Shown: positions 14,867-38,232 of the stretch, one piece after another | Layout of the letters: every line of letters starts with the position of its first letter | How positions within the stretch are numbered: position 1 is the stretch's first letter | Assembly: GCA_965603825.1 (NCBI GenBank) | Contig: CBFDEM010000012.1 | Location: 62,001 to 126,000 of the forward strand | Length of the DNA stretch: 64,000 bases | Direction: 5' to 3' | DNA from: Blepharisma stoltei ATCC 30299 | Lineage: Eukaryota; Protista; Ciliophora | The notes under the pieces: model-generated | Database searches by the model: none | What the model was told of the DNA's origin: nothing | What the model saw: only the letters and a program-made list of their open reading frames with translations | Position numbers and translations under genes: made by a program

Positions 14867-16606
14867 ATGGTAGAACAAATCAAGAGCCTCGTTATAAAAT
14901 GTGAAAGCATCAGAAACATTTCAATTTCTGAAGATGCTGTAAATGAGATCAAAGAAATTTATTCTGTAAGCAAAGAAATCAGTAATAAGCTATATAAAAA
15001 GCTAATTAGCCTTATTTGGGATGTCGGTGATATAATCATATATCAGCAACAGCTTAAAAAATCAAGGGACTGGAAAAGCTGGTATGCAGCTGCTGAACAA
15101 ATAGATAAAATAGAAGGCAAAGAAGAATGGAAAAAACGAGAACAAAGCCCATTATATGATTACAGGCTACTACGGCGCAGATTGAAGCTAATTCGAAGTC
15201 TTCGACAGCAAGACGATATTCCAGCCTTAGTCCATCACCTTCGCTCAGGCCTGCTTCGAGGCTTAGGCGGTAGCTTGAATTCTACGTTATATACCAAGAC
15301 TCTTGTGGATACCAAATATCTCATAATGGAATACCAAGATGAAGTTTCTAATGCCTTACGGCACGTACTGCATTCTCAAAAATACCCACTTCTTGACAAG
15401 GTCAAGTTTTTCTCAGCATCCCGCTATGCGTTTGGAAAAACCGCACTACTTATGAGTGGTGGCGGAGGATTAGGAATTTACCATTTGGGAGTAGTAAAAG
15501 CTCTGTATGATCAAGGATTGATGCCAAGAATTTTATGCGGGACTTCAGCTGGGTCTATGGTGGCATCATTTATAGGAACCACAAAATGGGAAGAAATCCC
15601 TAAGTGGTTTGAAAAAGGAGCTTTAAAATATGGACCTTTTGAAGGGCTAGCTAAAGGATCTGTGCAGAGAAAAATTAAAAGACTGTTTAAACAGGGACAT
15701 TTGATGGACAGTAAAACACTTGAAGTGTTTTTGAGGGCAAATCTAGGAGAAGTGACATTTGAAGAAGCTTATGAAGCAACGGGAATTATTTTAAATATTA
15801 CTGTCAGCGAATCAGGAAGCTTTGACGATTTCCGATTGCTGAACTATTTGACAGCTCCTCATGTCCTCGTATGAAGCGCTGCTTTAGCGTCTTGTGCAAT
15901 TCCATTTGTATTTCAAAGTGTAGAGCTAAAATGCAAAGACCATAATGGCCAGACTGTGCCTTTCCATCCAAGTGGGCTTAAGTTTATAGATGGGACAATC
16001 AAAGCTGATTTGCCGACACAAAAATTGGCAGAAATGTTTAATGTGAATGCATTTATAGTTTCACAGACAAATCCATGGGTTTTGCCATTTTTAACGCCAG
16101 AGGACGGAGGCGGCACTTGGGGTGACAGCTTTAAATTCAAGCTTTTTAAAGCTGTTAAGCGATTAATTATGATGGAATTCAGACATAGGGTCCAGCAGCT
16201 AAATTTACTTGATTTAAGCAGCACTTTGACATGGTTTTTAAGCATTTTTACCCAGGAATATAGAGGGCATGTCACAATCTGGCCTATTCCTTCTTTAAAA
16301 GACTATGTAAATATCTTATCAAACCCTACTGATGAAGATATCCAAAGATGCATTAGAAAAGGCCAATTGAGAACTTTTCCCAAAATAAATATGCTGAAAT
16401 CGATCATGGCGATTGAAAAAACTTTTGAGTCTTGCTACCATGAGCTGAGGGATAGAGTTCACTCCCAAGAGAAAAGAAAGTTCTCAATGGATGGGCAGCC
16501 AGATGAAATTATTCTTAAAGAAAGCTTGTATCAGACTGAACTAGATATTATCCCTGATATCAAGAATAAATTTGAGAATCAAGAAGTCATTGTAGATGCT
16601 CTATAA
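14867..16606 (+). CDS. Patatin-domain triacylglycerol lipase (TGL3/4/5-SDP1 family)
   Basis: MSGGGGLG, GTSAG nucleophile motif, LNYLTAPHVLV[TGA]SAALASCA, IDG, FNVNAFIVSQTNP. Confidence 0.93.
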
Positions 16607-16676
16607 ATAATAGATAGCTATTATATATGAATAAAAGCTAATAAAATGATTTATGCGAATTTCAGTTAAATCAAGC

Positions 16677-17039
16677 TTAATTAATGCCCAAAGCTACACG
16701 CTCTGGCTTAGACAAGTGTCTGACATACTCAAACTCGCGAAATTGGTCCTCTCCAAGTTTCCGATCGACAACTCCAGATGCAGGGTCAGTTCCAATTGGC
16801 CTTCTAAATAATAATACATGAGGCTCTGGAGGGTGAGAGCCATAATGATACCATCCTTTCGACATCTGCACTCCATACCGTCTCCATTCTTCATCAGGCA
16901 TCAATCCTCTCTCTATCAGCCTCATCCCCCATTCCTTCGGAAAAATGACCTGCCGATATTCATAGACTGAGTCATAGTATTTTTCAGAGTACTCAATCTT
17001 TGGAGGCTCTTCTTGTTTCTCTTTCTTAGCTTTATTCAT
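16677..17039 (-). CDS. CKS1: Cyclin-dependent kinase regulatory subunit
   Basis: IEYSEKYYDSVYEYRQV, EEWRRYGVQMSKGW, HPPEPHVLLFRRP. Confidence 0.95.
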   Translation of the reverse strand: MNKAKKEKQEEPPKIEYSEKYYDSVYEYRQVIFPKEWGMRLIERGLMPDEEWRRYGVQMSKGWYHYGSHPPEPHVLLFRRPIGTDPASGVVDRKLGEDQFREFEYVRHLSKPERVALGIN

Positions 17040-17283
17040 TATAGCCTAGGATTATCGTCGAGCTTATATAGACATCATTTCTTCAGCTGAAGATTTACTT
17101 CAAGGTATATGGATTCCATGCTGAAATTTATTTATAAAATAATGAATTTTAATTTTAATTTTAAATTTGAAATCTAGCCTAGATAAGGTTTGCCTCGAAA
17201 AATAATTTTTTTGAATTCCGTTTTAATATGATTTCTAAAAATCATTTAAATTATAAAACTTTATATTAATCTTTTCTTATAAA

Positions 17284-17929
17284 ATGGCCTCTAGTGATCA
17301 ACAACCAGACGCTCTTTACAAACTCCTCATCATTGGCGACTCTGGCGTCGGAAAATCTTGCTTCCTCTTGCAGTTCACAGAAGGCGATTTTAAAGAAGAC
17401 CACAACGTCACCATCGGTGTCGAGTATGGTGCCAAAACTCTGAAAGTAGCTGAGAAAAACATAAAACTCCAAATTTGGGACACAGCTGGACAAGAGTCCT
17501 TCAGGGCTATTACCCGTTCTTTTTATAGAAATGCGCACGGAGTAGTCTTAATGTATGACTTAACACGTTTAGAAAGCTATGAAAACCTATATGACTGGCT
17601 TAAAGAAATCAAGCAAAATTCTGATTCAGATGTCGTCATCTACCTTGTAGGAAATATGCTAGATTTAGCTGAGGACGAAAGAGAAGTCCAAACAGACATC
17701 GCACAGGCGTTTGCTGAAGAAAATAAGCTGGATGGGTTTACTGAGGCCTCAGCGAAAACTGCTGAGCATGTTTCTGAGGTAAATTATAACTAGGGTTTTT
17801 CAAAAAATAGCAGAAGTTTTGCACAAGAAAACACTGGAGAAAGCAACCAAAGAAGAAAAGCCAGCCCCTGCTCAGGCTCCAATTATAGTGCGTCCGACAC
17901 AGCCAGCAAAGAAAAAGTCATGCTGCTAA
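17284..17929 (+). CDS. Rab GTPase (Rab2-like); 16-nt intron 17779-17794
   Basis: GDSGVGKS, TIGVEYG, WDTAGQE, EASAKT. The C-terminal KKKSCC-TAA prenylation end is reached only by removing 16 nt. Confidence 0.92.
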
Positions 17930-17957
17930 ATAGCTTAATATTTAAATCTTTTATAAA

Positions 17958-18248
17958 ATGGCATATTTTCACGGAATGACAATAGATGGTGGAGTCCAGC
18001 GCTGTTATCCTGTCTGGTTGAAGTTTGAAGAATGTTTTAAAGGTGAGACTGACCCAATGGAAATCTGTAGAGACCAGTTTGACGACTATGCAGAATGCTA
18101 TAGGAGAAGAAAGGAAAAAAGACTGAATTATCGCATTAAAGAAGAGCTGCACAAGTGGAAAGTCTTGGCTATTCCTCAATATAACGAACTCACTGATTCC
18201 TTCGAGCCAGTAAGGCTTCCAGCAGATCCAGACGCCTATTTTAACTAG
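17958..18248 (+). CDS. Twin CX9C protein, complex I NDUFS5-like
   Basis: RCYPVWLKFEEC...ICRDQFDDYAEC. Confidence 0.75.
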   Translation: MAYFHGMTIDGGVQRCYPVWLKFEECFKGETDPMEICRDQFDDYAECYRRRKEKRLNYRIKEELHKWKVLAIPQYNELTDSFEPVRLPADPDAYFN

Positions 18249-18281
18249 TCTAATGGCCCAAATAAGTCTTAGTCTTATAAA

Positions 18282-20702
18282 ATGGAATTAAGCCTTTTCG
18301 AAAAAAGTGAAATTGAATTGGTAGACGGTGCTTTAGAAGTAAAAAATAGCTAGGAAATTGAAGAAAATTTCATTTATGTCCGCGACCTCATTGGCCTCAA
18401 AACAGACGAAAGCGAAATTCTAGCGATTTTACAAACGAGATCGATACAAGGAGAACACGAGATTATTAGTAGAGGCGTTTTGTATGGGATTCTGACAGGG
18501 ATGGACTGGCTGAGCTATTTGTTATTGACTTCTCGAGATAATTTCCAAACGGCTTGCAATACTCTCTCTATGATGCTGCCTAAATTGAAATCGACACAGC
18601 GAGCTGTTTGGCTGTTCACGCAGCTGTGGAAAACGGAGTCTCCAGCGTTTACAGGGCTTTTTATGACGATTTTGAGAAGTCTGGATTTGGTGAACGAGAT
18701 TAAGACGCAGCTGGATTGGATTAATACACAGCAATTCGCCTCTTTGGTGTTTTATAAAGTTCTGAGGGGTGCTTCACTTTTGGCGGCAGAAGGGATGCCA
18801 GTGTTATTTGATCATATTCATATAATTTCTCAGATTTGGATACACAGGAGAGACGCATGCATTTCTATAGGAAGAGACTTAGTAAGAATCGTTAGTAGCC
18901 TGGCAGAGTCAGGCGGAATTGAGCATATATGAAATGATTTATTTGCCTCTGGGCGTGATGGAGCTCCATTATATTGAAGTCTGTTATGCACCCCTACACA
19001 TCCTAAGTTTCATTCAGTTTTACTTAAGCCAGAAATAGAAAATAAGCTCGCATTTATCGTAGAAAATGGCTACCAAAGCAACTATACCCGATATCTCAAA
19101 TGAATAATGGAGACCTACAATGACCACGTACTAGACGATTTAGTTAGGTTTATAGTAAATTATCCAGTGGAAAAAGAAAACGTTCACAGGTGGCAAATAG
19201 TCGCCTGGCTCCTCACAAATGAGACAGACCACCAGATTCAAGCAAGCATAAAGCAAGCCCTTGTATATGACTGCTTATTTTTTAACTCCCAGGACCAAGC
19301 TTATATAATAGAGCCAGCCATGTCATTTCTTAAGCACTCAATCACAAACTGCCCAAAAATCGCTGAAGAGCTGCTTGAATTTATGCTGACTTCGGCAGAA
19401 CTTTATGATAAAAGATCGACACCGAGGATTATGAGAAGCTTAAAAGACTGTTTTACTGTCGCTTGTACACAAGGATTTTTCCCGAGTTTGCAGTCTTTAA
19501 TAGGTGATGAAAGAATTGACGGAAACATTAGGACGAGGCTTAAAGAACTCCTAGAAGCGACTACACATGATGGAGATTTGTCACCACCTGCTGCTCTATT
19601 TGAAAAAGAAGATACATCATTATCAGCCCCAAGGTCCTTTGTTGACTATTTAGGAGAAATTGCTTTCGTTTTTGCTAATGAGCCTAATTTTGATATCTTA
19701 ATGGAAATGATTCACAAATCTCAGCTTGTCAATGAAGACTTATGTAGTTTCGTTATCAAGTGTTTGACTCATGAGTTTATACAGCCTCTAACTTTAGACT
19801 TGCCTCAAAACAGTGTGCTATATCAAATATTTTTACATAGTGAAACTAATGCTAGACTTAGAGAGCTACTAAAACTTTTGCACGCTGCAGAAAGCTCTAT
19901 TGGTGTTAGGCTACTTGTATATTCTTTACAAAAAAACTCCAAACTATATCAGCAATTTGAGGACCAGTTAGAACGGGATTTATTAGCAAGTCTTCAAGAT
20001 ATTTCCTTGGAAACTTTACATTGGGTGTTCCCTGAAGTCTTTGCAAAGCTTTCTAAGCTTGTCACCCCAAATATAATCCATTTCTTCTTACAGACCACTG
20101 ATATGAAGCTTCTTCATAAGGTTGAACAAGATTTAATGCTCGATTCTTATTCAATTCTGTCTAATAAACTTTCCCAAGTCTTGGAAAAATCTGACGAATT
20201 TTCATCATCAGAAAAAATTTACCTGTGGAAATTGATACAAGCTGAAATAAAGCCAGACCAAATTGGGAAACTTCTGGACCATTTTCAGCATTCTTTGCCG
20301 CTCGGCAACCAATGAGAAAGCTTATCAGGGCTGGTTTGCTATTTGTGCTCACATACTTCACAAATTAATATAGAAAATGTGAAACAGATATTGACACTGC
20401 CTGCAAAATATTGTAAAATTACGGTTTCTGTGGTTTTGGTAGGGATTAAGGTGGAGTTTGTAAGGTTTATTTAGATTGAAGAAGCAGTCTTAGAAATTAT
20501 AAAAAAAGCCCAATTTCAAGGACAAATTAACATTTTAAAGCACCTTAAGCATTGGATTGAGCAGGATGGAAAATTAGCTTCTATTGTAAAAACAAAAAGC
20601 CTGCAAGAGGTGCTGATAAGTACAATGCAGGCTCTTTCTTCTGATTATTTTAGGGAATTCAGCTGTCTTTTAGAAACTTCAAGGCAATTATATTCATCTT
20701 AA
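18282..20702 (+). CDS. INTS3: Integrator subunit 3 / SOSS-A homologue; introns 18339-18353 and 20460-20474
   Basis: GVLYGILT, SRD, IGRDLVRI, IENKLAFI, DLVRFIV, RWQIVAWLL, YDCLFF..IIEPA. Two canonical 15-nt introns and four TGA give one frame. Confidence 0.82.
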
Positions 20703-20836
20703 TAAGTTTATGTTTAAATTAAGTATTATTTATATATATAAAGAGAGAAGCTTACTGAAATAATGAATTTTAGGTTTATAAATAACTTTGAGGTCTTTTT
20801 AATTTCTTAGTTTAGCGGCTTTTACAGGTATAAAAG

Positions 20837-20909
20837 GTCAGAGGCCAGGATTTGAACCTGGGACCTACAGTGTTGCAATACAGTCGCTCTACCGCTGAGC
20901 TACCTCTGA
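20837..20909 (-). tRNA. Atypical tRNA-like gene 1 (8-nt anticodon loop ATTGCAAC; identity undetermined)
   Basis: Acceptor TCAGAGG/CCTCTGA, D arm GCTC-AGCGGTA-GAGC, T arm CCAGG-TTCAAAT-CCTGG, C73, downstream TTTT. Confidence 0.75.
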
Positions 20910-21101
20910 TTTATAATAATGATAATCAAACTTTCTTCAAGAAATTGACTTAGAAAGGAACCTGCAAGGTAAGATTAGTTTTTTCATTGTTAGAAGCCTC
21001 TTTAAAATTTCGTCTTACAAAAAAAAATTGATCTTTTTATTTATATTACTGCAATTGAAATGATTTTTAAAAATAAGAATTGATCAGAAACACATTCAAA
21101 A

Positions 21102-21173
21102 GTCAGAGGCCAGGATTTGAACCTGGGGCCTCCGGTGTGTCATACAGACGCTCTACCACTGAGCTACCTCTGA
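21102..21173 (-). tRNA. Atypical tRNA-like gene 2 (loop ATGACAC; nominal GAC/Val)
   Basis: Same body as gene 1; anticodon stem TCTGT/ACCGG with a T:C mismatch; TTTT terminator. Confidence 0.75.
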
Positions 21174-21422
21174 TTATATATTAATATTTGAGCAGCAAGT
21201 GATCTTCAAGAAATGATAAAATTGTATTTGCAAATAAATTATCAGAAATCAAAAGCTATCAATAAATCCCATAAGCATTTATTGTAAATAGGTATATGAA
21301 ATAAAATAAATATAAATTAAATATTATATCAAAATGCTTAAAATACTTATAGAATAATGGGTTTTAATTATTTGAATAAATAAATTTATTGATCAACATT
21401 AGCTTTTAAATAAGTTAAAAAT

Positions 21423-21495
21423 GTCAGAGGCCAGGAATTGAACCTGGGACCACCGGTTTGCAGTACAGATGCTCTACCAACTGAGCTACCTCTGA
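21423..21495 (-). tRNA. Atypical tRNA-like gene 3 (loop ACTGCAA; nominal TGC/Ala but no G3:U70 and no U33)
   Basis: Same body; D loop AGTTGGTA; T5 terminator. Confidence 0.75.
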
Positions 21496-22618
21496 TAATT
21501 TTCTCTGTTTTCGCGACATTTTCATCTCTTGAAAAGTCTACCACCCTATAAAATAATCATTTTCCTCATGAAAATATGACTATGTTGTTAATTTGTTATC
21601 GAGTAATTCTTGTTATAAGCAAGAAAATTTCAATATGGATTAAATAATGGTCAGAAAAATTCTTTTGTCATAATTATTATAGCAAATAACTTTACCAAAC
21701 ATGAATTTGAAGATATCTTCAATAAAATTAGGAAGTTTGGAGCTCTTAAAGATTTATTACTCGATCAAAATTTGGATTTTTGGACTTTTTTATAAATTTT
21801 AATTTTAAAGAAAGTGGCCTCTATTTGAAGTTAATAATAAAAATTCACAGAAATCCTGCAATTTTAAAGTGGCAAGCACTCTAAAGAACACAAAATAATT
21901 CATGAGTCAAAATATTTGTTATGTATAGAATCATTCTTATTGATACTCAAAATTAATGAATCTTTACTATAACTCTATTTCAATTTTTAATTTTAATAAT
22001 TTCTTTAAATAAAAATCTTTTTGTCTTGAAAGCTTCATTTTTTGGATATCTTAGCATCATTTCTGTCAAAAATAATGATGATTTTATTAAGAGCCCATTA
22101 TAAAATGGTGAAGTATATACAATTTTATAATTTATAAACAAATAAAACTAAAGATTTCGACTGCACATTTATTTTATTTAAGCAATCAGAAATTTATAAA
22201 ATAAATATTAATTTCAAAAAGAAAAATATATCCTATCACTGGCACAGTGCTTGTTGAAGTTTCAAATTCCATATTTAATCTAATCGTATTTATATGCTTA
22301 ATTATAACTATTCTAACAGATAATTATTTAAAAAAATCCCAGCTCAAGATATTTTAGGATTTCCAGAGAATTTCATTATTTTTTACAAGTCTGTAAAGGC
22401 CTAGAAAATTATTTTTCATACGTAATGTCATATTACATTTCTGATCCATTTCTGTAAAGAAGCCATAATTTTCACTCCATTTTCTTATCAATAATAAAAA
22501 ATACCTTAAAATACAAAAACTTAAAGTTTTATTCATATTAAGTGCCGATCCATTTAAAATTATTTAACTAAAGCTGGCTTTTTATCGATAAACGAATGGC
22601 GCACATCGAATTCTAAAT

Positions 22619-25504
22619 ATGGCTAATAATTCTCAAATGATGGATAATCTTTCCCTTAGCGGAGCACAGGTAGATGAACTGGAAAAGGAACTTGAAGAAA
22701 ATCCTTTTAATATCCGAGCCCTTAGTGAATTGGCTCAACATTTCGCAAGTCAAGGGGACTATGCATCAGCATGTCAGCACTACGAAAAAATAGTTAGAGT
22801 AGATGAAGAGAACGGTAAGGCCTGGACTGCCTTAGGACACTGTTATCTTCTAAAAGGCGAATATCAGAAATGTTTTACCGCTTATCAGAAAGCTCTTTAT
22901 ACTATGGAAGATAACCGAGATCCCCAGCTGTGGTATGGCATCGGGCTCCTCTATAATAAATTCGAAAGTTATGAATACGCAGAGCCTGCTTACCAAGCAG
23001 TTTTAAGGATTGACCCTAATTTTGAGCAAAAGCATGAAGTCTTATACAAATTAGGGCTCATCTATAAGAAGACAAAATCTTTTGATAACTCCATCACTTA
23101 TCTCAGAAATGCAATGGCATGTGAAAATGTCCCGATTTCAAGAAAAGTTGATGCATTGTGCCATATAGGCAACTGCTATGAAAAACAAGAGAAAATGGAC
23201 GAAGCGATCAGTATTTATCGAGAAGCCCTGACCTTAGATGAAAGCAATTTTAAAACTATGGAATATCTAGGATGGGCCTTAATGAACCACTCGGCCCATG
23301 AGCAAGCTTTAGAAATTCTCAACCGAGCCTTAGAGTTCGTTAAGGAAAATTGCGCAGAGGCTGGTGACATCCATTACCTTGTCGGGAGATGCTACTTGGA
23401 CTTAAAAAATTACCCAGAAGGCCAGTCAGCATTTCAAAAAGCCATTTATAAAAACCCAAATGCGTACATATATTGGTGCAGCATCGGCATTTTATATGCC
23501 TTAGCAACCCAACCTCAAGACGCCTTTGAGTGCTTCGTAAAAGCCTCCAACATTTCTCCAGAATGTGGAGATGTCTGGTTTAATATGGCTGTTCTATACG
23601 AGCACTGCAAGCAAAAACAAGAAGCAAGTCTTGCCTATCAGCGTGCCTTCAGCTTAGACAGTTCCAATAAAAAAGCTATTGATAGAAAAACCAAACTTCA
23701 AGCTGGCGATGAAACTTCGCCGATCCCTGATTTTATTCACCCTATTTTTGAAGTAAGTGACGTCCCATTCTCAATCAAAAAGAACGACAAAGCCTTAAAA
23801 CCATTAAAAACGCTTCCTGACATTAAAAATTTCAGAAGAGATGGAGAAATAGAAGAAGAGAGGTCTGAAGGTCCTCAACAGGAAGAAGAAGAAGAAGAAG
23901 TAGACTTAGAAGCAGAAGAAGCAGAGGAGCCTTCAGAAGAAAAAAAAGTTAAAAAAGAAAAGATAGAAGAAGAAAATGTAGAAGAAGGAGAGGAAGAAGA
24001 AGAGGAAGAAAGTGAAGAGGAAGAAGACGAAGAGGATGAAGAAGTTTCCATTAAAAGCTATGAAAATTCAGGATCTGAAGCATCGTCAACAGAAAAAAGA
24101 AGAACTGAAGGGCCAAGGACAAGAAGAAGAGACTCTATGCAAACTAGAAAAGCGTCGGCGCCACAAGCGGTAAGTCAGCCACCATCTCAGCAGCAAAAGC
24201 CAAAACAGGCTCAGCCACAGCCTCGACCTTCAACCCCCGTGACGAGCTCAGTTACTCAGCCTCAACCTCAACAATCCCCAGCTTCTCAATTTCAGTCAAT
24301 GCCTCAAATGATTTTCCCACAACGACCATCTACAGCTAATCTCCCTCAGCCATCCCCTAAAGTTGCAAATACAAACCTTCCTCAAGCAATTCAAAATAAA
24401 GCTCCACAAGTTCCAACCCCTTCAAAGCCTCAAACAGCGCCAATTTTCCCATCAGGCATGAGTCCATTTGGAGCAATGCCAAATTTCCCAATGCCACCAA
24501 ACATGCCAGGGATGCTAAATCACCCCCAGTCAAATATATCACAACCAGGAATGCCAAATTTCCAGCTTCCACCTAGCATGCCAAACATGCCGAATATGCC
24601 AAACATGCCAAATATGCAAAACATGCCCAACATGCCCAACATGCCCAACATGCCCAACATGCCCAACATGCCCAACATGCCCAACATGCCCAACATGTCC
24701 AGCATGCCTAACATGCCAAGCATGCCAAATATGCAGAATATGCCAAATATGTCTGGGCTTTCTTCACCAATAGCAAATTTACCACCTAATCAATCTTCAA
24801 ATGTCCCTACATCAGGAATGCCAAATATGAGTGCACTTCAAGGAGGAATGCCAAACTTCAATATTCCCAATATGCCTTCAATGCCAAATAACCCAAACCC
24901 TGGAAATATGCCAAATTTCCCTGGACTTTCAGGGATGCTAGGCATGCCTGGTGGACCTAGCATGATGATGCCTGGAATGATGGGGATGCCTGGCCAGCCA
25001 GGAATGATGGGAATGCCTCCTCAGTCAGGTATGATGTCTATGCAAGGAAATTCTCCACAGCCACAACAAGGAAATAATCAGCCAAACCAGCCTAAAGGTC
25101 CAGTTCAAGGATTTAACCCTTATCAGATGGCAGCATTAATGATGAATCCGATGTTGGCAGCTCAAATGATGTATGGGATGGGCCAAGTGCCAGGGATGAA
25201 TCCTATGATGCCACAGATGGGAAATATGCCAATGGGAAACATGCCTGGGTACCCAGGAGCCATGCCAGGAGGTATGCCAGGAAACCCACCTCCAAACATG
25301 AATATGGCAAACTGGATGCAAAACATGAGGATGCTTGCTCAAGCTAGACAACAAATGAACCCTCAAAATCCTGCCAAAAAAGAGCACGACGAAGACCTTG
25401 CAGAAGCTTTAGCAAATTTGAATGAAAAAGGAGAAGATGAAGATGGCGCAAGAAAGCGAAGAGGCGACGACAAAGACTCAGCAAAGAAGAAAAGAAAAAG
25501 ATAA
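22619..25504 (+). CDS. Ssn6/Cyc8-like TPR corepressor with acidic tract and Met/Pro/Asn-rich tail
   Basis: About 10 TPRs including WTALGHCYL, DPQLWYGIGLLY and YWCSIGILY (Cyc8/UTX-type TPRs); basic C-terminal NLS-like end KKKRKR. Confidence 0.88.
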   Translation: MANNSQMMDNLSLSGAQVDELEKELEENPFNIRALSELAQHFASQGDYASACQHYEKIVRVDEENGKAWTALGHCYLLKGEYQKCFTAYQKALYTMEDNRDPQLWYGIGLLYNKFESYEYAEPAYQAVLRIDPNFEQKHEVLYKLGLIYKKTKSFDNSITYLRNAMACENVPISRKVDALCHIGNCYEKQEKMDEAISIYREALTLDESNFKTMEYLGWALMNHSAHEQALEILNRALEFVKENCAEAGDIHYLVGRCYLDLKNYPEGQSAFQKAIYKNPNAYIYWCSIGILYALATQPQDAFECFVKASNISPECGDVWFNMAVLYEHCKQKQEASLAYQRAFSLDSSNKKAIDRKTKLQAGDETSPIPDFIHPIFEVSDVPFSIKKNDKALKPLKTLPDIKNFRRDGEIEEERSEGPQQEEEEEEVDLEAEEAEEPSEEKKVKKEKIEEENVEEGEEEEEEESEEEEDEEDEEVSIKSYENSGSEASSTEKRRTEGPRTRRRDSMQTRKASAPQAVSQPPSQQQKPKQAQPQPRPSTPVTSSVTQPQPQQSPASQFQSMPQMIFPQRPSTANLPQPSPKVANTNLPQAIQNKAPQVPTPSKPQTAPIFPSGMSPFGAMPNFPMPPNMPGMLNHPQSNISQPGMPNFQLPPSMPNMPNMPNMPNMQNMPNMPNMPNMPNMPNMPNMPNMPNMSSMPNMPSMPNMQNMPNMSGLSSPIANLPPNQSSNVPTSGMPNMSALQGGMPNFNIPNMPSMPNNPNPGNMPNFPGLSGMLGMPGGPSMMMPGMMGMPGQPGMMGMPPQSGMMSMQGNSPQPQQGNNQPNQPKGPVQGFNPYQMAALMMNPMLAAQMMYGMGQVPGMNPMMPQMGNMPMGNMPGYPGAMPGGMPGNPPPNMNMANWMQNMRMLAQARQQMNPQNPAKKEHDEDLAEALANLNEKGEDEDGARKRRGDDKDSAKKKRKR
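24623..24694 (+). repeat. Coding minisatellite (ATGCCCAAC)x8 encoding MPN, within a longer degenerate tract
   Basis: Eight perfect 9-bp units. Confidence 0.95.
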
Positions 25505-37627: not shown

Positions 37628-37742
37628 GGCTTAGATTATGCTCGTATGGAAATTGTTAAATTTCTAGGAAATTTAATAGATTTTGCATTGTAAGAAGTTT
37701 TTAATTCCTTTTATAGATATGAACTTTCTAAGATCACAAGCT

Positions 37743-37782
37743 GACTGTTTGGCCGAGTGGTCTAAGGCGCCAGCTTCAGGCG

Positions 37783-37817
<35 letters not shown>

Positions 37818-37822
37818 AGTCA
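37743..37822 (+). tRNA. tRNA-Leu(CAG)
   Basis: Type II cloverleaf, anticodon arm CCAGC-TTCAGGC-GCTGG, long variable arm, A73, T6 terminator. Confidence 0.97.
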
Positions 37823-38232
37823 TTTTTTATATTTTAAGTAGTCTAATTCTATTATAATAAAAAATAAGTGAAATTAAAGTAGTATAATAAATTTCAAAAT
37901 TTTAGCTGCTTATATTTCTTAATTCATTTACTCAGCATATCAAGCTAGTGCTTTTCTTTTCCTTCAGTAAAATTTTCTATTTTGAAAATAACACAAAGAG
38001 TTTGCTTAGAGTTATTTTAATAGCTAATAAATAAAACTCATTTATTTAAAAATAGTTATAAGACCTTAGATTCTAAGGCTGCTTTATTGAAAGAGGGAAG
38101 CATATTCATCTCTAAATATACCAAATAAAAAATGTGAAAATCATATAAATCAAAATTAAAAATATATTTAGAAGTATCAATATCATATTAAAATTTTCTT
38201 AAAAACGGACAGGCTTGTTTCATAATTTATAA

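Follow-up and report, generated by a model that had tools for sequence, protein, structure and literature searches.

A family of tRNA-like genes with a common acceptor end and paralogue-specific anticodon loops in Blepharisma stoltei: candidate tRNA mimics or adaptors

Three tRNA-like genes were found on the reverse strand of the window, i.e., the whole 64,000-nt stretch of Blepharisma stoltei DNA analysed here: t1 (20837-20909, 73 nt), t2 (21102-21173, 72 nt), and t3 (21423-21495, 73 nt). ARAGORN called all of them, and they matched the Rfam tRNA model (RF00005, gathering threshold 29 bits) with 54.4, 59.1, and 53.7 bits, respectively; no family other than tRNA matched in the Rfam scan of this region. 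The genes lie in a segment without a protein gene (20700-22619), between an INTS3-like gene with an Integrator subunit 3 N-terminal domain (18280-20700, + strand), located upstream of the cluster, and the gene of a TPR protein. In-frame UGA codons or tiny introns carry the INTS3-like gene past the end of its table-11 open reading frame at 20315, to approximately 20700. A canonical gene for tRNA-Leu(CAG) (37742-37823, + strand, 59 bits) lies 16 kb from the cluster.

By the RF00005 alignment, t1–t3 have the general cloverleaf features of a tRNA: a 7-bp acceptor stem, D and T arms, and the conserved core bases. The acceptor stem is UCAGAGG/CCUCUGA, with U1-A72 and the unpaired C73, and the D stem (GCUC/GAGC) and T stem (CCAGG/CCUGG) are identical in the three genes. 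Each gene contains A- and B-box-like sequences and is followed on the same strand by a T-run. A Pol III terminator-like T4 run (20832-20835) starts 1 nt past C73 of t1, a second T4 run (21098-21101) immediately follows C73 of t2, and a T5 run (21417-21421) is found 1 nt past C73 of t3. The description of these bodies in the first-pass annotation, with perfect acceptor, D, and T stems, intact boxes, C73, and a T-run, was thus confirmed by the sequence, ARAGORN, and Rfam.

The genes have been listed before. The tRNAscan-SE table of a 2023 Swart-laboratory preprint on B. stoltei ATCC 30299 (10.1101/2023.10.09.561518) contains them as Contig_2.trna6 (82909-82837, 'Ala TGC 55.1'), Contig_2.trna5 (83173-83102, 'Val GAC 59.4'), and Contig_2.trna4 (83495-83423, 'Ala TGC 55.3'). 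These sequences are identical to t1, t2, and t3, respectively, and the table coordinates equal the window positions plus 62,000, which places the window on macronuclear Contig_2. The preprint lists them without comment, as ordinary tRNAs. Their scores of 55-59 compare with 70.4 for the canonical B. stoltei Ala-TGC gene and 79 for Val-AAC in the same table.

The anticodon arm is where the three genes depart from a canonical elongator (5-bp anticodon stem, 7-nt loop, U33, purine 37). In the standard register, t1 has the stem ACUGU/ACUGU with a U:U mismatch at 29:41 and an 8-nt loop, AUUGCAAC. The stem of both t2 and t3 is UCUGU/ACCGG; it encloses the loop AUGACAC with the nominal anticodon GAC in t2, and the loop ACUGCAA with the nominal anticodon UGC in t3, where C33 replaces the universal U33. 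A U:U or U:C mismatch at 29:41 and A32 occur in each gene, so the sequence bears out the earlier report of an odd arm with a U:pyrimidine mismatch, a purine at position 32, and differing loops, one of them 8 nt long. None of the three has the full set of elongator features, and the loop is regular only in t2, which can be drawn as a nearly standard tRNA (7-nt loop, U33, A35, C36, A37, C38). RNAfold formed the acceptor, D, and T arms in t1–t3, with the T stem of t2 one pair short; the standard anticodon stem was not formed in any of them.

One reading, in line with the tRNAscan-SE labels, is that these are ordinary redundant elongators, with t2 acting as a minor Val(GAC) tRNA and t1 and t3 as minor GCN decoders, all charged by the usual synthetases. 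They score as tRNAs with both tRNAscan-SE and Rfam, and their arms match canonical B. stoltei ones in the 5′ stem strand and the 3′ loop halves: the strand UCUG is common to Ala and Val, the loop part 'UGCAA' occurs in Ala-UGC, where 'GCAA' follows position 34, and 'ACAC' follows the same position in Val. The regular loop of t2 includes A35, C36, and C38; on viral tRNA-like ends, including some with C73, these Val determinants are enough for wheat-germ ValRS. The acceptor end speaks against this reading. In t1 and t3, A3-U70 replaces the G3:U70 pair needed by AlaRS, and the canonical Ala genes of B. stoltei begin with GGG; in t2, C73 replaces A73, which an identity review lists for eukaryotic Val. 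The conflict of the nominal reads with the identity rules, already pointed out in the first-pass annotation, holds for Ala (no G3:U70); for Val (no A73) it is less firm, as Val-accepting viral ends with C73 are known. The 8-nt loop of t1 and C33 of t3 are likewise foreign to ordinary elongators, and the canonical Ala (AGC, TGC, CGC) and Val (AAC, CAC, TAC) genes already cover the Ala and Val codons with much higher scores.

The Asp, Cys, and Trp identities did not fit. As compared with tRNA-Asp, t1–t3 have C73 instead of G73, the anticodons UGC and GAC instead of GUC, and G10-C25 instead of G10.U25; only C36 and an Asp-like top half remain of the Asp features. Cys identity (U73, GCA) and Trp identity (A73, G1-C72, CCA) are contradicted by C73 and U1-A72, and GCA or ACA appears only when the anticodon is read in a shifted register.

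To place t1–t3 among the tRNA genes of the organism, the B. stoltei assembly (41,464,486 bases, 64 contigs) was searched. The exact acceptor pattern gave seven matches in 41 Mb and none for the reversed control, a difference far beyond chance. A loose version of the pattern returned mostly chance matches and no new members in the whole genome; a metagenome scan with a loose acceptor pattern gave at least 120 matches, and those listed were chance matches without a tRNA-like body. We also surveyed the acceptor ends of the tRNAscan-SE entries by fetching one representative per class. Almost all low-scoring or odd entries share U1-A72, C2-G71, G4-C69, and C73, including 'Met pseudo', 'Ser GCT 41', 'Glu TTC 58.9', 'Val CAC 51.8', 'Phe AAA 32', 'Undet', and 'Arg GCG 41'. 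This combination was absent from the canonical tRNAs, as judged from one representative per class.

The family assembled in this way has about 15 copies: 13 intact genes, one with a broken acceptor stem, and one that has no T arm. Its signature is U1-A72, C2-G71, G4-C69, and C73, with A3-U70 in all but one member, and t1–t3 match both this acceptor/C73 signature and the Asp-like T arm exactly. A T4–T6 run lies within 6 nt of C73 in all 13 intact genes. In the copy without a T arm (55 nt, G000:C45:362305-362359, + strand; L262:106-160), the acceptor stem is that of the family, C73 and a T-run are present, and the D arm is of the Val type; this copy represents either a truncation of a family gene or a variant that lacks the T arm. 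A covariance model built from the 13 members recovered these genes at 65-86 bits; the next matches were the canonical tRNA-Asp (54 bits) and the broken 14th copy (53 bits), followed by Val, Glu, Ala, and Gly tRNAs. The nominal loops carried on the common acceptor end include Glu, Gly, Asp, Arg, Ser, and Leu types, and no single standard identity explains such a set. With this added to the acceptor-end conflicts, we regard ordinary elongators as an unlikely explanation of t1–t3, if one that still carries some weight.

The helices of the family are maintained across the paralogues. Pairing in the acceptor, D, and T helices amounts to 96-100%, and 11 of their pairs have changed on both sides. With the poorly aligned anticodon stem included, 14 of 20 pairs have changed on both sides, as compared with a mean of 5.5 in shuffled alignments, and none of the 500 shuffles reached 14. 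Within the acceptor stem, pairs 1, 2, and 4 are constant and pair 3 differs in a single member; covariation is seen at pairs 5-7.

MAFFT and Infernal left the anticodon arm in a wrong register (54% paired), and a fixed-coordinate alignment was used instead. It consists of the 18 bases after position 26, ungapped, in the 14 full-length members, i.e., the 13 intact genes and the broken copy. The register, a 4-bp stem with a 10-nt loop, was chosen by inspection; in 11 of the 14 members it is simply these 18 bases, the exceptions being Contig_47:21582 (c47_21582), which is shifted by a single base, and two members whose segments are 17 nt long. In this family register pairing in the stem reaches 91%, and the stem scores 0.66 for covariation, compared with 0.24 in shuffles and 0.03-0.17 when the partners are slid. 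All 14 members have the G:C pair that closes the stem. The loop is 10 nt long, or 9 nt in two members; position 6 of the loop, which sits where C36 would be, is always C, the only invariant loop base. Read in this way, t1 has a 4-bp stem and the 10-nt loop UAUUGCAACA, and t2 has a perfect 4-bp stem (U-A, C-G, U.G, G-C), the 10-nt loop UAUGACACAC, and a 4-nt variable region. One stem mismatch remains in each of t1 and t3; the closing G:C pair and the loop C are present in all three genes. This alignment favours a family anticodon arm in which a G:C pair closes a 4-bp stem and the 9-10-nt loop contains a single invariant C.

The body of the family points to its ancestry. The acceptor and T arm of nearly every member are closest to the canonical B. 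stoltei tRNA-Asp(GUC), from which the family acceptor differs mainly by A3-U70 for C3-G70 and C73 for G73. The family loop halves resemble the anticodon loops of canonical GNN-reading tRNAs. By sequence similarity, therefore, the family appears to descend from a tRNA of another identity. We also considered a primer-binding-site role; the complement of the CCA-extended 3′ end did not exceed the control level in the MAC genome.

This ancestry bears on a possibility raised in the first-pass annotation, namely that the RCA at loop positions 4-6 is complementary to UGY and could serve UGA decoding. According to this proposal, t1–t3 would be helpers that read UGA or UGN with the anticodon placed one base 3′ (GCA, ACA, GCA), or +1 frameshift or quadruplet tRNAs acting through the 8-nt loop. 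Blepharisma provides a setting for such helpers, as UGA encodes Trp in B. stoltei and a cytosolic tRNA-Trp(UCA) is lacking (10.1101/2023.10.09.561518). Most family loops do read NCA (UCA, GCA, CCA, ACA) in the 3′-shifted register, natural 8-nt loops change decoding in yeast mitochondria (PMC3113583), and UCA reading has been raised in the preprint for a related tRNA-like RNA (10.1101/2023.10.09.561518). Among the 14 full-length members, however, only the C is invariant, and the base after it is A in nine. This frequency is as expected for descent from GNN-reading tRNAs, whose loops best explain the RCA at positions 4-6, and the UGY/UGA link was not supported. To our knowledge, there is no evidence for frameshift sites in Blepharisma genes. 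The acceptor end also has neither the Trp (A73, G1-C72) nor the Cys (U73) identity elements listed, and UGA as Trp already has a supported decoder in the published explanation, a tRNA-Trp(CCA) whose anticodon stem has 4 bp (Kachale et al. 2023). The accompanying suggestion of A-to-I editing in the 'Val' gene is inapplicable, as position 34 is G in the normal register. We find UGA helpers or frameshift tRNAs highly improbable.

The comparison with other Blepharisma species, read from the ARAGORN drawings in the preprint (10.1101/2023.10.09.561518), revealed orthologues of the cluster. NODE_46 of B. japonicum carries the t1 and t2 orthologues, with the canonical Leu-CAG gene 16 kb off, as in the window. 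The cluster on NODE_1834 of B. undulans comprises a gene of the t1 type, one of the UGC type that has U33, and one of the GAC type. The spacers of the clusters in the three species are 192, 357, and 126 nt. The 8-nt loop and the U:U mismatch of t1 are unchanged in both relatives, and its stems show compensatory changes over the three species (7:66 is G-C, G.U, or A-U; 28:42 is C-G or U-A). The t2 orthologues differ at only two loop positions. Overall, the orthologues are 92-97% identical beside flanks that cannot be aligned.

A further orthologue was found for the family member at Contig_42:127654, at the syntenic site of a relative represented by a Logan contig of SRR24908292 (L250:3653-3724, − strand). 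The two genes are identical at 66/72 bases, including 18/18 in the anticodon arm, and A12-U23 is replaced by the compensatory C12-G23. The flanking DNA is 45% identical upstream, and the adjoining kinase coding sequence is 75% identical. At the protein level, the kinase and INTS3 of this relative are 89% and 70% identical to those of B. stoltei. No tRNA cluster follows its INTS3 gene (contig L038), indicating that the t1–t3 cluster has moved or is absent there, and no tRNA genes were found downstream in the orthologue contigs of the INTS3-like neighbour (L038-L040). The contigs with orthologues of the TPR neighbour begin too near that gene to cover the cluster site. The syntenic site of Contig_42:127654 gave no match in Stentor coeruleus and three other heterotrich contigs, where about 14 kb per species was covered. 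The search for further copies suggested in the first-pass annotation yielded the B. stoltei family and the orthologues in B. japonicum and B. undulans, and none in Stentor at this one site of about 14 kb.

These data allow two readings without a function of the RNA to be weighed. The first holds that the genes are slowly decaying tRNA pseudogenes or a tRNA-derived repeat. The non-canonical, thermodynamically weak anticodon arms and the low tRNAscan-SE scores would agree with decay, and the preprint raised the possibility that pseudogenes are among the related copies (10.1101/2023.10.09.561518). Some members do decay, as shown by the copy with the broken acceptor stem and the copy without a T arm. 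For the family as a whole, this explanation is very unlikely: compensatory changes are found in all four helices, the terminator is kept in all 13 intact copies, and the near-identity of the orthologues, with the t1 loop unchanged and two differences in the t2 loop, stands beside unalignable flanks. A tRNA-derived SINE or dispersed pseudogenes were rejected as well, there being only about 15 copies, no SINE-like tails, an own T-run in each, and compensatory changes. Many decayed SINE-like copies across the genome, named in the first-pass annotation as an observation against its reading, were accordingly not found, and its view of a specialised tRNA-like family, not random decay, is upheld by the covariation and the conservation of the orthologues.

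The second reading assigns the genes a role at the DNA level, with TFIIIC/Pol III sites serving as chromatin boundaries or similar and the RNA being irrelevant. The position of the cluster in a 1.9-kb gap between two protein genes would suit such a role, as would the A- and B-box regions being the best conserved internal parts. The most conserved, covarying element is nevertheless the acceptor stem, which lies outside the boxes; the anticodon stem covaries and the loops are conserved between species, and neither is needed for TFIIIC binding. We consider this the least probable of the explanations weighed here.

The paralogues behave differently from the orthologues. The closest paralogue of t3 is Contig_47:21582, which is 86% identical; its anticodon arm is wholly rewritten, with the stem covaried and the C kept. 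Contig_2 and Contig_47 carry paralogous blocks (window 16494-25009 compared with L260, G000:C42:17000-26998), whose genes have 72-82% nucleotide identity and are about equally diverged. Contig_47 is 71.6 kb long; its block is without the INTS3-like gene, the N-terminus of the TPR protein is 95% identical, and the intergenic DNA cannot be aligned. A tRNA-Leu(CAG) gene lies 12 kb from the paralogous cluster on this contig. Loops that are kept between species yet rewritten between similarly old paralogues form the pattern expected if each loop had a sequence-specific role. Judged by these alignments, t1–t3 are members of a selectively maintained tRNA-like family and not products of decay. They are probably neither normal Ala/Val tRNAs nor dead copies.

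The family model also led to RNAs with measured expression. In the preprint, six loci without tRNAscan-SE calls have tRNA-like YAMAT-seq coverage, and among them are three tRNA-like genes on Contig_1, with about 7,700x coverage, CCA tails, and modifications (10.1101/2023.10.09.561518). The same work states that the Contig_1 RNAs resemble no other Blepharisma tRNA gene by BLASTN and describes purifying selection on the tRNA-like molecules across Blepharisma species. Two D-arm-reduced tRNA-like genes on Contig_1 (G000:C1:246555-246624 and 246761-246829; L261:356-425 and 562-630) matched our family model weakly, at 31-32 bits. Both share U1-A72, C2-G71, C73, and the T arm with the family, and in both a G:C pair closes a 4-bp stem and the sixth base of a 10-nt loop is C; one of them has a U:U mismatch, as in t1. 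A signature combining the T arm with GAC occurs nine times in the genome, in these two genes and seven family members only. From their position and description, Contig_1:246555 and 246761 are probably the expressed Contig_1 RNAs of the preprint. On the basis of the shared elements, the D-arm-reduced RNAs are more distant relatives of the family, and by analogy with them the cloverleaf-complete members are likely expressed.

The resemblance has its bounds. The Contig_1 genes share the T arm YCAGG/UUCAAnU/CCUGR with the family, among the tRNA-like molecules described for Contig_1 and Contig_39, the latter a tRNA-like(UCA) (10.1101/2023.10.09.561518). Those molecules have a shrunken D arm and were missed by tRNAscan-SE, whereas the t1–t3 family has a full cloverleaf and was listed as ordinary tRNAs. 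Expression, CCA tails, and modification signals were measured for the Contig_1 and Contig_39 molecules.

With the above results in hand, we propose, as the explanation that is on balance probable, that the genes form a conserved family whose Pol III transcripts would be tRNA mimics or adaptors with a private acceptor end and paralogue-specific loops. Each gene would most likely be an independent Pol III unit, given its internal A- and B-box-like sequences and the T-run after position 73. The transcript would adopt the L-shape of a normal tRNA, as its acceptor, D, and T arms are preserved together with the tertiary-core bases. It may then be matured like a tRNA, with CCA added. We suppose that the acceptor end common to all members is recognised by a single partner, either a synthetase-like or another acceptor-binding protein, and that each paralogue would owe its own specificity to its loop. 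A bolder form of this proposal, which we hold to be quite unlikely, is that Blepharisma uses another set of adaptor RNAs in parallel to its ordinary tRNAs. All U1-A72…C73 RNAs would be charged by one dedicated enzyme, and the loops would direct the one cargo to codons or quadruplets. Possible targets may be UGA or UGN read one base out of register, or may be independent of mRNA.

Several known systems resemble the proposed family in part. In nematode nev-tRNAs, body and anticodon disagree; these tRNAs are of Leu identity and combine standard 7-nt loops with a long variable arm. Like the present family, they pair a shared body and acceptor with several anticodons; the family loops, in contrast, are enlarged. 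In yeast mitochondrial tRNA-Thr1 and in +1 frameshift suppressor tRNAs, U33 is kept. One extra loop base, as in t1 and most of the family, occurs in tRNA-Thr1, which has an 8-nt loop and is derived from tRNA-His (PMC3113583), and in the SufB2 +1 suppressors. These are single genes with proven decoding, whereas the family is nuclear and multigenic and has often lost U33, and any decoding role is putative. From the same organism, the tRNA-Trp(CCA) of Kachale et al. (2023) has a conserved, shortened, and weakened anticodon stem, as in the family. That tRNA leaves the top pair 27:43 open and has a 7-nt loop and standard Trp identity; the family instead has an open or mismatched pair on the loop side, an enlarged loop, and an acceptor that fits no amino acid. 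The canonical tRNA-Asp(GUC), the best non-family match to the model, is set apart by its G73 and GUC determinants. We know of, and found in literature searches, no described tRNA class that matches a private acceptor identity combined with paralogue-specific enlarged loops.

Ciliates are the richest natural source of genetic-code changes, and the reading of UGA as Trp in Blepharisma is still debated. The published count of 49 distinct anticodons for B. stoltei includes GAC, GCG, and AAA (10.1101/2023.10.09.561518). In the tRNAscan-SE table of that preprint, these three occur only within the non-canonical family; the reported anticodon repertoire is therefore inflated, and the true decoding set is smaller. 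The family also ties unexplained, highly expressed tRNA-like molecules of the preprint to genes annotated as normal tRNAs. If the parallel adaptor set proved true, it would represent a new decoding or tagging layer in a ciliate with a reassigned stop codon.
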